Below are positions 10,480-22,485 of a stretch of DNA of 64,000 nucleotides, piece after piece (within the stretch, counting starts at the first letter, position 1; each line of letters begins with the position of its first letter). Both the position numbers and the translations under genes were made by a program. The notes under the pieces were generated by a model that was not told the DNA's origin, searched no databases, and was given only the letters and a program-made list of their open reading frames with translations. This DNA comes from Utricularia gibba (Eukaryota > Plantae > Magnoliophyta), in assembly GCA_002189035.1 (NCBI GenBank), contig NEEC01000019.1, forward strand, positions 124,001-188,000. The letters are read 5' to 3'.

Positions 10480-13400
10480 GGATTCAATGCAATGGCAATA
10501 ACACCCTTATTGTCACAAAAGAGTTGCGATATCCTAGTGGGAGATGTTAAGAAGTGAACTACTTTTCTTATTCAAACCACCTCAACCATTGTTGTAGTAA
10601 GAACCCGATACTTAATTTGATTAGTTGAACAAATCACTATCCTTTGCTTCTTACTCTTTCAAGCTATCAAACCTCATGCTCTTTTTTAGAATAATCATTG
10701 TATACTTGCTATACCTCAAGACAATCTAAGTTTGATGAATTTTAAGAACTAGAAAATACTTAAGTTTTCTGAGTTTACTGATTCTGTAAATATCCATCAG
10801 CCTTTGCTTAATCAATGGAGAATTCCCTATTATAACTATATCATCAACATTCAGTAGAAATAATTGTAATAGCACCATTTTTGCTGATATAGGAGCAAAG
10901 AGTACTCCGCATTAGATTGAAAAACCTACACTCAACAAGGTTGCTTGGAAAATATGAAACCATGTTTGGATGCCTACTTCAATCCATAGATCAATTTATT
11001 TAGTTTACAGACAAAATGTTGTAGATCATTTTCATGAAATCCAAGAGACTATTTCATGTAAACCTCTTCCTATAACTTGTCATGTAGGAAGTTGATAAAC
11101 GGAAATTTCCTAATATCGTTGCACTAAAAATAGAAATATGTATCAAATAAATTTATAGTCTCTAATCCTCATAAAATACAAATTAAGCACGAAATGCACA
11201 GTGGAATTCGGGGTCGATCACAAGGAGTTTGTGCCTGCTAAGTATTTTAATAGATGCATAATTTGGAATACAGTGGTCTTAGTCTAAGTTCGAACTAGCA
11301 GTGGTAAGTAAGTTCAATAAACAAAATCAGGTTTTAATGCAAAAGGTAACAAGTGCTGGCTCTAACTCAGAATAATACGAAGATGCCTTAAGGGTCTGCA
11401 ATTAGTGTGGTGCTAAAATGTCTAATTTAAATGACCATATTCCTACACTCACAACTTCAAATAACCTAAGTCTACCCAAGTCATTCATCATATTTTCGGT
11501 TAAGCTAGTCCACAATATCATCACCAACATTGCAATTAGGTCTACCTGCATGCAAAGTGTATAGAACTAGGTCTACCCGATTCTACTAGTTCTACCCCGG
11601 ACTAACACTTACTGTTCTCGTCTTGAATTGTTGGTCTACCTCTAAATCAAACATCTCAATTGTAAAGCTACTTGTCCCCCTCTTTAGGTCTACCCATAGA
11701 TTGATAGAAACAAAAGTTAAGAAACAATGATGAATTTTTATTAAGAATCCTAGATTCACACCATCATGCTTTATCTTAAGTCATCCCTAGGGTTCTAGCT
11801 ACTCATACTTTGAAAGTAAAACATGATAATATTAATATAAAGTAACAAAAATGTCAAGAACATAGTGAAAGAGTTGAGTGCAGAAATTGAAAACATCAAC
11901 AAATGAAAATAAAGCAATAAGAGTTCTGATTTCCATTTGCTACTATTCTCTGGCTGGAACAGTAGTGTTGGACTGGGTCTTGATCTTCTTCCTTCACACT
12001 GAAGGTTCTTCTCTAGAAAAATCGCCTTTCTTTCTTCTTCTCCTTCAGTATTCTTCGTGTTCGAGTTGGGGGAGAAACCCCCTCATGTGTGTTCTACAAA
12101 CTCTAGTCCTCCCCCCTCTTGCGATTCTCTCTCCTCTCACTTCCCAAGGTAGGTACAGTTTCTGGCAGCTTTGCTATTCCTGCCCCTGATTTGCAGATTG
12201 CCGTTGTGACAGTATACTCATTGCTCCCTGCTGCATGGTGACTTGCACGAAATCCTTGTTCTTTTCCATGATTTTCGGGTTGCTGCTAGACTTAAAATTG
12301 GGTTAGAACATGGGTGGGCTAAATCCTAACACACAAAAAAACAACATTTTCCTAAATTATATAAAAATACTTAAAATTATGAAATAAACAACTAAAGATA
12401 ATTAAAAACCTGTAATTTTTATATCATAAAAGTATGAAAATTTGTGTGCTATCAGAAGGCATTTTTAACATTAATTTGTGTAGGGGCCAAGCATGGTATA
12501 ATGTGAACATTTACTATTTTTTTAACACTAGACTGAATGTCTCATCATAATCTAATCCAAACAATTGCGTAAAACTACAAGCTACCATCACACTGAATGT
12601 CTCATCATGATTTCCACGTACTATTCAAATTCATGGCTTCCGTTTCTTCAATCATGGGCAGTATCCAATGTGGATCACAAGCCACATCTTCATGCGACGA
12701 TGGCTCAGCTACCCATCATGTCAAAATAGAGGAATCATCAATAGCAATTAACATTTAATTTGCCAACTTGAGAGGTGGTCATTGGTATCTCATGGACTGC
12801 CTCAAAGTATCTTCTAGTTCATGGAACTCTACGATTCATTATCATGATTAATGGTTTCCACAAGATCAAATTCATCAAGGTTGGTAACATGCAGAGCAAG
12901 GGAATCTGATAGTGTTCTAGAAGGAGAAGTTATCGGTGCAAAGTCAAAGGAACTAATAGAGATTTGAAAATTTGATGTATCTACAAAATTCTGGAAAGGG
13001 AACTTTTTTTCATTAAACATAAAATCACATGAAACTATGATACTTTATCTAACCATATCAAACCATAATTTTCTTATCGTAAAAATAGAAAAATTTGTAT
13101 ATCTACCAGTTGATACATAAATAAAAGATTGTAGTGAAAATTGGGGACTAAAAGTACATTTTGAGATTATCAAGTGATGAGGTCATGAATACCAAAGATG
13201 AAAACAATGAAGATGAAGAAAAGTTCACCAATTCTCCCATAATTTCACTTGAGTCAATCACTAGATAAAGAGCATAAAAGAATCAAGAATTTTTCAAAAG
13301 GTTATAAGCCAATCAGAAAACCATAAAGTTTATGGCATTAAGTTCAACCTACTCAAATTGAATCAAGTTAAATAATGTTGGGCCATAACTTCCTAATTCA

Positions 13401-14560
13401 CTTGTAGTGTTTTTACTCCGAGTAAGCCAATTTATCTACTTATATAAGAAGGGTTTCATTCTTGTTTAGAGATAATTATAGTTGCTATGTGCTTTGAGAG
13501 TAATACTCTAACTTATGTTCTAATTCACTTGTAAAACTTTAGACTTATCAAGTTTTATCATTTTCTTCCTAATTCCTTGTAAAACTTTAGACTTATCAAG
13601 TTTTGTTTATGGTGTTTAGTGTGGTTTACCATTCTCACTTTCTTCCTTGTTTTGTGAGTGTAATACCATTTTTATAGTTTAAGTTGCAAGGATATTCATT
13701 CCTTGAGGGCCAATTTCTTCTTTTCTTAAAGAATTGCTTCATCTAAAATCCAATATTTGATTTGCCAAACACTTGTTGTTTAGAAGATCGCATCATCAAG
13801 GACCTTGGAGGGTTTTTAAGTAGACATGACCAAGATTAGTGATAGAATGGTTAGTAGGTAACGAGTAACACTAGTGCCTATGCCAATGTAGAGAAATAAT
13901 TAGAAAAATTATCTAAATCTAAAGTGATATGTTTTGAAGCACCACTATCAAGAGCCTATATATAATCATTAGTAACTTCTTTCGAAGACTACTCAATACT
14001 TAGTAATGAAGTATGAGAAGAAGCATCTTCTATTGAGATATTCGTATTCAGTGTTGATGATCTTTATTTGACTTATAGTGATCATAGCAATTAACAATAT
14101 TGTGATTCAGATGGTCACAAATCTGACAAACTTCTGTCTTGAGTTCCTTGGAAAGAATTTGTAGCATAGCTTGGATGATTTCTCCTTCCATAATTGGAAA
14201 GACCATCATTCTTGTGATTATGGTGACCATAGCTACCAGAATATTTGGTGCATAACACTAGATTAGTGAGCACGGTCGGAAACTTATTAAAATTGCAATG
14301 TTGAATAGTTTCTTCACATTGCATGAAAGTAGCAAATATAATGTCAAAACTAGGCAATGAGTGCCAGCATAACAAAAGCATCAATGATAGATTGATAGAC
14401 TTCTTGCAACTCCTCAATAAAGTACATGTTATCTCCAGAAGAAGTAGAATTACCAGTTGTGGCCAACTAATGACAAATAGAGTGAATCTCATTGTAAAAG
14501 GCAAGAATGGATTGATTTACCTTGCTTAATATTAGTTTGAGAATACTTCAACTGTTATAT
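10480..14560 (-). mobile_element. Decayed Ty1/Copia element (gag zinc knuckle, integrase tail, RT), interrupted by later insertions
   Basis: Minus strand: CQICDHLNHNIVNC knuckle (~14080-14130), MFNEKKFPF integrase tail (~13020), EPSSHEDVACDPHW (~12680), QINVKNAFLHDKL*EEVYM (reconstituted across the 11093-12454 insertion), KLIYGLK*ASKTWF and LLNVDDIVIIGNS (decayed YVDD). Many stops. Confidence 0.75.
11093..12454 (-). mobile_element. Athila-family solo LTR (family alpha), reverse orientation, inserted in Copia RT
   Basis: Starts with tgataaacggaaatttcctaatatcgttg, the exact reverse complement of the 3' end of the LTR at 58944-60381. Ends tgtgctatca. Flanks GAAGT (11088-11092) and GAAGG (12455-12459) are a 4/5 TSD. 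Confidence 0.85.
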
Positions 14561-17753: not shown

Positions 17754-18852
17754 TCATGTGTGTTCCGAAGGCAGCACTCCAGCACAAGATGAAGTGCCGC
17801 AGAAACAGGGACGACCATTCGGGTTGAGCCGAACATCGCCATAACTGAAAGTGAGTTCGTCTTCATCAATGTCTCGTGATGCGAAGAAGCAGACACGAGG
17901 CAGCAATGCGCCAGAGCTTCTCACGATAGCAGTATTGAGATTCCCGCCATCGCATGAATGATTGATGAATCTCGCAACGTTCCCGATCATCGTTGCGTCG
18001 ATGTTGATCCTCAGAGACGTTTTCCCATCTGAAAGATGCTCCTTCACGACCAGGAGGGCTGGAGTTATGCGGCCAGCAGATGCAAGTTTGTCGTAGGTTT
18101 GAAGTCTTCTTCTTGCTTCCTCCGTTGATAAAAGCTCGCCTTCAGCGGTTAGGAGTAGAAAGAATGAGAAATGTAACCCCGCAACTTCATACATTCAATT
18201 TGATCAGAAATCGAAAGAAATGAGAACAAGAGAAATATTGACCTGCATACTCGCAGATGAAATGCCCTCTGGGAATCATCTCCGCCGCGTACAATCCCCA
18301 ACCCTTTTCTCTACTCCTCACAATCTTCAACCGGCGCGTGATTCCTTGCTGAGTCGCGCGATTCCCACAACCCAAATCGCAGTCGCAACTAGGGCCACAT
18401 TCCCTCGACGTCAAATCCCCAATTTTCTCCAAGCATGGGCAACAACCACCGCCGCATCCAGCGCATTTGCATCCAAATGCATCCGTGACCTGGAACAGAA
18501 ACGGTTCGTTCCTAAACGGCGACAACAAGGCGTCGTCACCGGAGCCCCAGGGTTGGCGGAACTCGGATATCCTATAAATTCTTTGGGTCGGTGTGTAGAT
18601 GAAATAGGAGTAGGGCAGCGAGTCGCCGGAGTTTTGATTGACAAACGGGACCGGAAGGGCTTCCATTCCTCTACTGGAATCCAGTGTTCTTCGAGAAGTA
18701 ACTGATTTGCAAAGCTGGTTCAGAGTCTTGCAGGCCAATGACATGGAGGCGAGCTCCGTATGGCTAAGGTAGGGGAGGATCATGGCGGCGCACTGCAATA
18801 GAGCCTCACCGCCGTGGCGGCTGGTTTCCCGGCTACGATTTTCACCCTCCAT
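17754..18852 (-). CDS. SUVR3: Histone-lysine N-methyltransferase SUVR3-like (pre-SET/SET/post-SET), 2 exons
   Basis: Exons 18852-18243 and 18139-17754 join as CEYAG|ELL. Motifs ECGPSC.C...CGNR.TQ.G, KGWGLYA, NIDAT.IGNVARFINHSCDGGNL, ELTFSYG, post-SET CFCG...C.G.LP. Confidence 0.92.
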
Positions 18853-19299: not shown

Positions 19300-22139
19300 C
19301 TACACATCCAGCAGCAGCCTGCGAGGATCTTCAACCACATCTTTGATTCTTCTCAAGAAGAAGACAGCTTCTCTCCCATCAATCAGCCGATGATCATATG
19401 TTAGTGCAAGATTCATCATAGGCCGAGCAACTATGTTGCCCCCAACAACCATGGGACGGTTAACTATGGAGTGCATTCCCAAGATGGCAGACTGCGGTTC
19501 ATACATATAATATTAGCAACAGCATACCTCTCAGCAAACGTAATTAAAAAGACAGTTTCGTGAAGTGGAAAACCTGAGGTGGATTGATGATGGGAGTACT
19601 CAGGAGGCTTCCATAGACACCACCATTTGAGATGGTGAATGTTCCTCCAGCCATCTCATCGATGGATATAGTGCCATCGTTGGCCTTCTTAGCAAGAATA
19701 TTGATCGATTTCTCAACCTCGGCAAAATTCATATTCTCAGCATTGCGAAGAACAGGGACAACAAGACCCTGGAAAAGAACGATCATTATGGACACAGGTT
19801 ACAAAAACTGCCGTGTGCAAAATGTTTAAGATGGTGGGTGCAAGGGGCGGAGCTAATCTTGCCTTGGGAGTACCAACAGCAATGCTAATATCCACGTAGT
19901 CTCTGTAAATGATATCATCGCCATCAATAACAGCATTCACTATTGGCTGCATCTGTAAAGCGCTGATAGCAGCCTGGAAATGTAGAAGCAAGTATAGAAT
20001 AACTCAACAGCAATGAAAAATTGAAGGTAAATTTTAGCATACCTTCACAAACCCTGACATCAGTCCAAGCTTTACACCATGTTTTTCAAGAAACGCTTCT
20101 TTGTAGTCAGAACGAAGTTTCATTAAGTTAGTCCTGCGTCAACAAAAATGTTGCTACTTTTATGTAACTCAGAAAAGACTGAATGGGAACTGCGATCCAA
20201 TGGCAATGGCAGGCATGATGCACTCAATACAACTGAATAATACGTAACATGCTATACAGGAATCTTTGGCTCCACAAGCAAAACAGGTACTATACGAAAC
20301 TTACATGTCAACTTCATTAAACGTTGTCAGCAATGCAAATGTATTCTGAGAATCCTTCAGTCGTACTGCAACACGTTTCCTGAGCCTTGTCATGGGCACC
20401 TATTTCAATTGTAGAGCAAGAGGTTATGATACATCATCTTATTTCACCATAGCTAAACAAGAGAACATTCAGAGATCTTGCACATACACGTCTTTCCCTA
20501 TCTTTAGGAGGAAGCTGAGGTTCTACTGCTGTAGGCTTTGGTGGCGGGGCAGTACCCTTAGGCTTCTCCACAATAGGGGCGGCTTCAACCTTGGTAGGCT
20601 TCTCCTTTTTCTCTTCAGGAGGCGATGAAGGTCTTGGAACTTTTTCAGAAGGTTTCTCATCAGATGGCGCAACATGAGTTGCAGTTTCACCAGATTTCGA
20701 TATGATAGCAACCTTGGTACCAGGTTCCACTGTATCTCCCTCCTTGGCAAGCAACTGAGGACATGCATGAAGGGGTAAAAAAAGAAAGAAGAACAATCTG
20801 CTCCCAAAGCTAAGAAATACCAAGAAGTCATGTTCCCCGTGGGGCCTACCTCCAGGATAACACCCGCTTCAGGACTATTGACATCGATAGTAACCTGTGA
20901 TTGTAAGAAAATATCAGCCAATATTTGGAAATACATTTTAGTAGACTCTCTGTAATGCTCACTTATCGCCAATCAAATTTTAACTGGCATGGAGCAAGAA
21001 TTAGTGGAGTAAATCGATAGGTTTGAACAATTAACTAGTCTCCGTTTGGTACCTTATCCGTTTCAAGAATTAATGGAGTGAACCGACAGAAATGGAGTAA
21101 CATTGGTACCTTATCCGTTTCAACCTGGGCAATTGGCTCATCCACCTCAACTCTGTCTCCGGGCTCTGCTCCGTCAAACAGGAAGGGGTACAAAAAAAAA
21201 AGCAATCAAAAACTTCAGGTATGTCCCCTTTGGAAATTCACTAGTTGAAATAACATTCAAGGAAGATACTTTTCAAGAATGTTGCTAATGTTCCATCAGA
21301 TATAGATTCACCCATATACGGGACAACAGCTTCAAATGTATCAGCTTCTGTTTGAGAGTCAACAGGAAACGGGCAAATGTTAGTGTGAGATCATCAACAA
21401 AAAAATTATAAATGTACACCATTTCACATAATGTTGAAATACAGCAATATTTCTTCCCATAAAATGCACATCTAAAACTCAACCAATTTTCTCAAAAAAA
21501 GAAAACCGGTAAAAAGAATACCACTGCCAGAACTAAAATGCATTCTTGATATCCCAAATGCACCTCGATGGAGATTGATCCCATGAACCCTGAAAACGAC
21601 ACAAAACATGAACATATGTGAGGTGAAAACATATTAGGATCAAAATTTACTAGGAACCATTAGTTAGAAAGAGGAAGAAGAAGAAGAAGAAACACCTGTT
21701 GGGGGTTGAATTGGTGCTACGAACTGCATACAAATGGAGGAAAAATAACAAAAAAGATATTCAATCATGCAATCCGTTAAAAGAAGCAGGTAGCATAATA
21801 CGAAAGCAGGAAGTAATACCAGTGGTATAGGACTGACAGGATTGTAAGACCTAATCATAAAACAATAAGGGGCACAATGTCTTATCTCCATAAAAAAAAC
21901 CGACAAAATCCAACAGGTAGATGAAACTGGAACTACAATTACCCTTCCAGAAAATGAGCTTGAACGATCCACACACACAGCAGGCCTCAGCCTAAACGAT
22001 GATTTCCCATAGACCTAATAAAAAAATTACAGCTCAATCATCTCGTCACCCCTTGGTACAAAATCCGTAATAACAAAGCAAGAATTACCGCACAGGCCAA
22101 TGCACTGGAAGCGGTCTTCCGCCTCAATACCCCCAACAT
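19300..22139 (-). CDS. DLST: Dihydrolipoyllysine-residue succinyltransferase (E2) of mitochondrial 2-oxoglutarate dehydrogenase, multi-exon
   Basis: Exon 1 (22139-22089) [17 protein letters not shown] is transit-peptide-like. Lipoyl domain [13 protein letters not shown]...AQVETDK|VTIDV; Pro/Lys/Glu linker; [30 protein letters not shown]; [25 protein letters not shown]|SAILGMH; [14 protein letters not shown]...LLLDV*. Small N-terminal exons were only partly resolved by eye. Confidence 0.96.
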
Positions 22140-22430
22140 AATGGGTTTGATAGCTACAGCTGCAGGAAACGTCAATTAATACGATAAGCCACTGAAGAAC
22201 CGCGTTAAACAATGGGGAAAAAGTTAACTTCCACGCCCACAACAGGAAACAGATCTCAAAATGAAAAATTGATAAACAGATGATTCAGGGATAAAAGGAG
22301 ATACCTTGTCTGCTAGATGGCTTGAAGCTCCAGGAATAGATTAGGGCGCAACTTCTTCAACTCTTAGGATCGCTTTTTTGACTGCAGGGGTGGAAGCCAT
22401 TTGGAAAGGATACTCCAGGAAGGGGGAAAT

Positions 22431-22485
22431 TGGGCTTGAGATTTTCTTAAGAATGATTCTGTGCTTATATGTGGCCCGTTGGGCC
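22431..22485. promoter_or_regulatory. Site II (TGGGCY) cluster upstream of DLST
   Basis: TGGGCT at 22431-22436, GGCCC at 22473-22477 and TGGGCC at 22480-22485. Site II/TCP motifs are typical of promoters of plant nuclear genes for mitochondrial proteins. Confidence 0.5.

Follow-up and report, generated by a model that had tools for sequence, protein, structure and literature searches.

A second, identical 5' splice site at the lipoyl-lysine exon of a plant 2-oxoglutarate dehydrogenase E2 gene is probably a silent pseudo-site

In the window (the whole 64-kb stretch of DNA analyzed here), a mitochondrial E2 gene contains the exon end that encodes its lipoyl-lysine twice, each time together with a GT donor, so that two donors for one acceptor exist in the DNA. 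The question raised by this locus is whether the second donor is used. The initial annotation proposed that a local tandem duplication may have produced an alternative E2 with two ETDK motifs. We found that a second, identical and in-frame donor did arise by tandem duplication; however, the isoform itself was not supported by transcript contigs, related proteins or orthologous genes, and the second donor is probably a silent 5' pseudo-site derived from a small lineage-specific tandem duplication.

The E2 gene and its tandem repeat

Exon translations, protein alignment and spliced contigs identified the gene as a DLST orthologue, with the following layout:

19300..22379, minus strand: DLST orthologue, the plant mitochondrial 2-oxoglutarate dehydrogenase E2 gene
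22305-22379, minus strand: 5'UTR exon
22139-22137, minus strand: start codon
near 19300, minus strand: stop

In a Pfam scan, the exon translations matched Biotin_lipoyl and 2-oxoacid_dh. The lipoyl-lysine exon scored 22.2 bits with PF00364 (Biotin_lipoyl; cut-off 22.1) over an 18-residue piece, three exons matched PF00198 with E-values of 1e-7 to 1e-22, and the DHRxxDG catalytic motif of the 2-oxoacid_dh domain was present in the last exon. When one catalytic exon was used in a full HMMER scan, plant E2 proteins were recovered, and in word searches seeded with the proteins found in this way the top full-length matches were named dihydrolipoyllysine-residue succinyltransferase of the 2-oxoglutarate dehydrogenase complex. 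The closest relatives were annotated as E2o and not as PDH or BCKDH E2. Plant E2o proteins showed 89–97% alignment with the exons of the window, the nearest proteins were from Lamiales, and the lipoyl-lysine exon was 94–100% identical to Lamiales E2o proteins. No full-length E2o of the same genus was found in the public protein collection, where the best match was a Rehmannia glutinosa protein (P0259), with 80% identity over the variable linker exon and 93–100% over the other exons. The source plant probably belongs to the Lamiales or lies near them. A Lamiales homologue of the lipoyl domain matched the solved lipoyl domains 1GHJ, 1PMR and 9NJT, which confirms homology only.

The two donors are contained in a 21-mer, TTGAAACGGATAAGGTACCAA. 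Its two copies on the minus strand (21123-21103 and 21066-21046) match without a single mismatch, and their start-to-start spacing is 57 nt. No third match was present in the 64-kb window when 2 mismatches were allowed (0 expected, based on 100 shuffles). The elements of this region are listed below:

21110..21165, minus strand: lipoyl-lysine exon, 56 nt; contig pieces 21108-21163/21165 joined on both sides
21103..21123, minus strand: copy A of the 21-mer, GTACCAA preceded by the final 14 exon nt; used donor
21053..21109, minus strand: 57 nt between the donors, intron in all assemblies; zero contig depth in bin 21020-21091
21046..21066, minus strand: copy B of the 21-mer, probable silent pseudo-donor, GT at 21052-21051; no joint from 21053
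21064..21089, minus strand: diverged repeat arm 1, 26 nt, tail of unit 1; 85% identical to arm 2
20995..21020, minus strand: diverged repeat arm 2, 26 nt, tail of unit 2; followed by TTG, as is unit 1
20895..21109, minus strand: intron as spliced, 215 nt, GT..AG; joint skipping 215 nt in X1, X5, X6 and X12
20850..20894, minus strand: next exon (VTIDV...)

In copy A, the exon, whose end encodes V-ETDK, terminates at 21110, and the GT occupies 21109-21108. Both donors read AAG|GTACCAA and are identical from -14 to +7. Translation of 21163-21038 showed that the exon residues run on into 19 stop-free in-frame codons, and the VTIDV exon begins 215 nt past donor A and 158 nt past donor B. The initial annotation was therefore correct with regard to the repeated 21-mer and its two donors, the length and openness of the extension, and the shorter intron that would remain if the downstream donor were used. 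The 57 nt between the donors are intron-like in composition (AT 0.61, U 0.35). With such a composition, and given the duplication, the chance that the spacing is divisible by three and the 14 new codons are free of stops is ~0.14; the in-frame, stop-free extension is a modest coincidence.

A second repeat pair, which had been overlooked in the initial annotation, is in register with the 21-mers. It consists of two 26-nt arms that differ at 4 of 26 sites, and their 16-nt core occurs only in those two places in the window. The repeat consists of two units in tandem, one of 57 nt and one of 69 nt; both open with the 21-mer and close with the 26-mer. The middles of the units (13 nt vs 25 nt) differ by indels, and whereas the 21-mer is identical at 21 of 21 positions, the rest of the unit is only ~83–85% identical and contains indels. 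Because the second, diverged pair is in register, the event was a tandem duplication that took in more than the 21-mer, its unit being ~57 to 69 nt long with TTG at its bounds. The differences at 4 of 26 sites in the 26-mer pair also imply that the duplication is not brand new. A dispersed repeat or transposon was considered as a source of the arms and rejected, as they are found nowhere else in the window.

Under simple neutral decay, with a divergence of 15–20%, the probability that all 21 positions of the 21-mer would remain identical is ~0.01 to 0.1, a figure that varies with the share of copy A held by selection. This preservation is mildly unexpected, and it could reflect weak constraint, gene conversion or an origin as a patchwork (filler DNA). 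The 64-kb window contains five exact, non-simple direct repeats of at least 16 nt within 300 nt, one of them being the repeat in the E2 gene. Small local duplications are therefore frequent here, and some of them will fall on splice junctions. Two more exact local direct repeats were of 29 nt at a spacing of 48 (13528-13604) and of 17 nt at a spacing of 60 (12532-12608).

Orthologous loci and related proteins

We compared the junction with six orthologous loci from five Lamiales families (Rehmannia, Phtheirospermum, Sesamum, Erythranthe, Salvia and Penstemon). Each locus had one ETDK/donor junction, and a second one was found in none of the six. The best rematch of the 21-nt junction inside the intron of each orthologue was 10–13 of 21, which is chance level. 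Since all six orthologues have a single junction, the duplication is specific to the lineage of the window. The comparison of this intron among relatives, which had been suggested earlier, thus gave no sign of conservation (0/6 Lamiales orthologues with the duplication). We conclude that the duplication is real, aged and lineage-specific.

None of the first 339 related proteins fetched contained two close ETDK motifs, and no double ETDK was seen in the ~430 fetched in all, those beyond 339 being seen as fragments only. Metagenome contigs yielded 0 matches to the spliced junction and 0 to the 21-mer (one scan each), an outcome that is uninformative. The only fairly near Logan contig found via the linker exon (L003) had exons ~85% identical to those of the window and unalignable introns; it reaches no further than 15 nt upstream of the VTIDV exon, and the donor is therefore missed.

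The donors of all six orthologues are comparably weak, with AAG|GTACTC. It was also observed that the first ~45 nt of the intron following the ETDK exon are conserved in L001, L002, L004, L005 and L007, and partly in L006, spanning Orobanchaceae, Pedaliaceae, Phrymaceae and Plantaginaceae. This conserved start reads GTACTCAATTTTAATAGCAGATGA..., then TAGTTTA.C; its donor, GTACTC, is weak, and the rest of the intron is unalignable. Judged by this conservation, it may be an intronic splicing element. The window's own intron start is only a loose match to it.

Choice between two identical donors

Transcript data were available as Logan contigs. Parts of the stretch occur in twelve runs, of which four (X1, X5, X6 and X12), from four studies, were compared over 20300-22450. 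The four are not on record as RNA (three are RNA by guess, and one is without a kind given), but their contigs were spliced at every intron of the E2 gene and therefore represent mRNA. A joint from 21110 to 20894, skipping 215 nt (20892/20894 to 21108/21110), was present in all four runs. The contigs carrying it extend 13 to 42 nt past the shared 14 nt into exon sequence specific to copy A, with 0 mismatches, and for this reason the joint cannot represent the downstream donor.

No joint starting at 21053 was found in the contigs of the four runs from four studies, it being noted that contigs drop rare variants. In all four runs, contig depth was zero over 20948-21091 (bins 20948-21019 and 21020-21091). 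Small depths in the bins at the intron edges (2.17 and 1.54) correspond to two exon bases spilling over (78.1 x 2/72 = 2.17), and thus the contigs offer no sensitivity estimate. The junction comparison proposed in the initial annotation, 21053 versus 21110 to the acceptor at 20894, returned only the latter, and transcripts joined from both donors were not seen in the contigs of the four runs. Judged from contigs, transcripts use the most upstream site alone, and the dominant transcript is the canonical one in every data set.

The core of the donor is weak, as AAG|GTACCA fits the plant consensus only from -2 to +3. Because nothing distinguishes the donors between -14 and +7, their core is weak and the orthologue donors are similarly weak, context must decide which one is chosen. 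Donor A is preceded by 50 nt with U 0.18 and followed, in the 30 nt from +8, by sequence with U 0.43 and Y 0.73. For donor B, the upstream sequence has U 0.38, and the downstream sequence has a purine-rich start, with U 0.30 and Y 0.50. We infer from these compositions that the upstream donor may be preferred for its transition from a low-U exon to a U/pyrimidine-rich intron. A fold that could mask donor B was not indicated, as the predicted RNA structure was no better than shuffles (z = +0.67).

These observations can be combined in the following model. A small tandem duplication would have doubled the final 14 nt of the lipoyl-lysine exon together with the GT donor and the intron start, in a unit of ~57 to 69 nt bounded by TTG microhomology. 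The units would then have diverged through substitutions and indels, the 21-mer excepted. The spliceosome would keep the original upstream donor, located where a purine-rich exon low in U gives way to a U/pyrimidine-rich intron, and copy B, embedded in intron-like sequence, would be spliced out with the intron as a silent 5' pseudo-site. Both the neutrality of the copy and this order of events are what we infer.

An alternative is that a genuine alternative 5' splice site exists in the downstream donor. Its use would insert 19 residues directly behind the lipoyl-lysine of a minor or conditional E2 isoform with two ETDK motifs, and the altered lipoyl domain would modulate the 2-oxoglutarate dehydrogenase complex. 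Several features are consistent with such use: the donors share everything from -14 to +7, the extension is open and in frame and would escape NMD, the remaining intron of 158 nt is viable, the weak donor core makes a context-dependent choice conceivable, and the 21-mer is better kept than its surroundings. However, 0 contigs in four studies use donor B or cover the extension, the related proteins fetched include no double-ETDK protein, and conservation is without sign, since the duplication is absent from the six orthologues.

The structure of the lipoyl domain also bears on this alternative. The lipoyl-lysine is located at the tip of the lipoyl beta-hairpin, and its lipoylation depends on the exact position of the lysine there. 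As in known E2 lipoyl domains, the lipoyl-lysine is set in the conserved ..ETDK|VTIDV.. motif, which the exon pair in the window encodes; unlike in these domains, the hypothetical isoform, which was not observed in contigs, would carry an insertion directly after this lysine. We know of no natural E2 described with an insertion at this place. In the hypothetical isoform, VTIDV would no longer follow the first lysine, which would retain the native segment before it, whereas the second would keep VTIDV and be preceded by FTPLIL in place of PIAQV. Each lysine would thus retain one of its two native flanks, and reasoning from the sequence and the lipoyl-domain literature suggests that the domain would likely be misfolded or unmodified. 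Overall, a functional alternative donor is unlikely. A more specific version, in which donor B is used rarely or conditionally and a poorly lipoylated or non-lipoylated subunit in the multimeric core tunes 2-oxoglutarate dehydrogenase in this lineage, appears very unlikely, and splice-level control of TCA flux is pure speculation.

Copy B might instead have a role without being spliced, either as an extra landing site for U1 snRNP that assists the weak donor or as a back-up donor. The weakness of the donor core in the window and in all six orthologues, and the perfect preservation of the copy amid divergence, could be understood in this way; on the other hand, the orthologues splice the same weak donor without a copy, and the predicted RNA fold provides no help, so that we regard such a role as highly improbable. 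Finally, it is extremely improbable that the second copy is an assembly artefact absent from the genome: although the contigs skip the intron, so that independent data did not show the repeat again, a duplication made by assembly is normally a perfect copy, and the unequal (57 vs 69 nt) and diverged units, with substitutions and indels outside the 21-mer, argue against it.

Internal tandem duplications that carry a splice signal are known to give rise to alternative splice sites and new introns. The duplication in the E2 gene is like these cases in mechanism, as a short duplication moved a splice site to a new place, and it differs from them in that the new site is used there, whereas no use was detected here. 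With the silent pseudo-site as the preferred reading, the closest likeness is to intron 7 of human F7, where a 37-bp minisatellite spans the boundary of exon 7 and the intron (Borensztajn et al. 2006, PMC1557585). The identical downstream pseudo-donors of F7 are functional in principle and yet silent, the silence having been demonstrated with 50 constructs, and the most upstream site is chosen (PMC1557585). In both genes, the first unit holds the exon end and the authentic donor, a later unit repeats both within the intron, and the most upstream site is used while the copy is silent, as seen in transcript contigs for the plant gene. F7 differs in having several 37-bp units that form a polymorphic VNTR in a mammal, whereas the plant gene has two diverged units of 57 and 69 nt.

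A second precedent comes from Arabidopsis, in which cryptic 5' splice sites are generally dormant and RBP45d guides U1 snRNP via U-rich elements located just downstream of the chosen site (SOT5 / RBP45d / PRP39a, PMC9813592). As in SOT5, a potential donor near the authentic one is unused; in SOT5 this changes when either the authentic site or splicing factors are altered. The difference in context between donors A and B also agrees with this precedent, as U-rich sequence directly follows the donor in use. It should be noted, however, that the cryptic sites of SOT5 are unrelated sequences, whereas the one in the window is an exact copy of the authentic donor. The duplicate donor in the window fits both the F7 and the Arabidopsis U-rich-element precedents.

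As it stands, the duplicate donor is an ordinary feature and matters little. It does offer a clean natural plant example in which a weak 5' splice site has an exact duplicate that goes unused, and a test case for how the plant spliceosome chooses between identical donors, whether by position, by U-richness or on a first come, first served basis. If copy B were used, the product would be the first reported splice variant of a TCA-cycle E2 with a disrupted lipoyl-lysine hairpin; no finding points there.

Other observations at the locus

Several additional features of the gene were noted. A 5'UTR intron of 145 nt (22160-22304) lies upstream of the start codon, and its joint was seen in run X1. 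The intron between the VGTPK and GLVVP exons has an apparent GC donor (AAG|GCAAGA), and not GT, at 19861-19863 on the minus strand, as judged from protein alignment. The public plant E2o gene models P0013 and P0010, both cluster representatives, are evidently mispredicted, both having skipped exons or read-through tails and one of the two a glycine-rich N-terminal fusion, and they should be used with caution as references.

The RNA contigs also contained a second transcript, ~90% identical, at 20304-20385, 20756-20857 and 21160-21270. It showed 8 differences in 82 nt, together with odd joints with a few unmatched letters. This points to a paralogue or homeologue of the E2 gene that is expressed from another genomic locus.

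Only ~450 nt downstream of the E2 stop codon, a two-exon gene is located at 17754-18852 on the minus strand. By eye, it contains cysteine-rich motifs like those flanking SET domains (..GWGLYAAE.., ..RFINHSCDGGN.. and ..CFCGTSSC..), and it probably encodes a histone-lysine methyltransferase.
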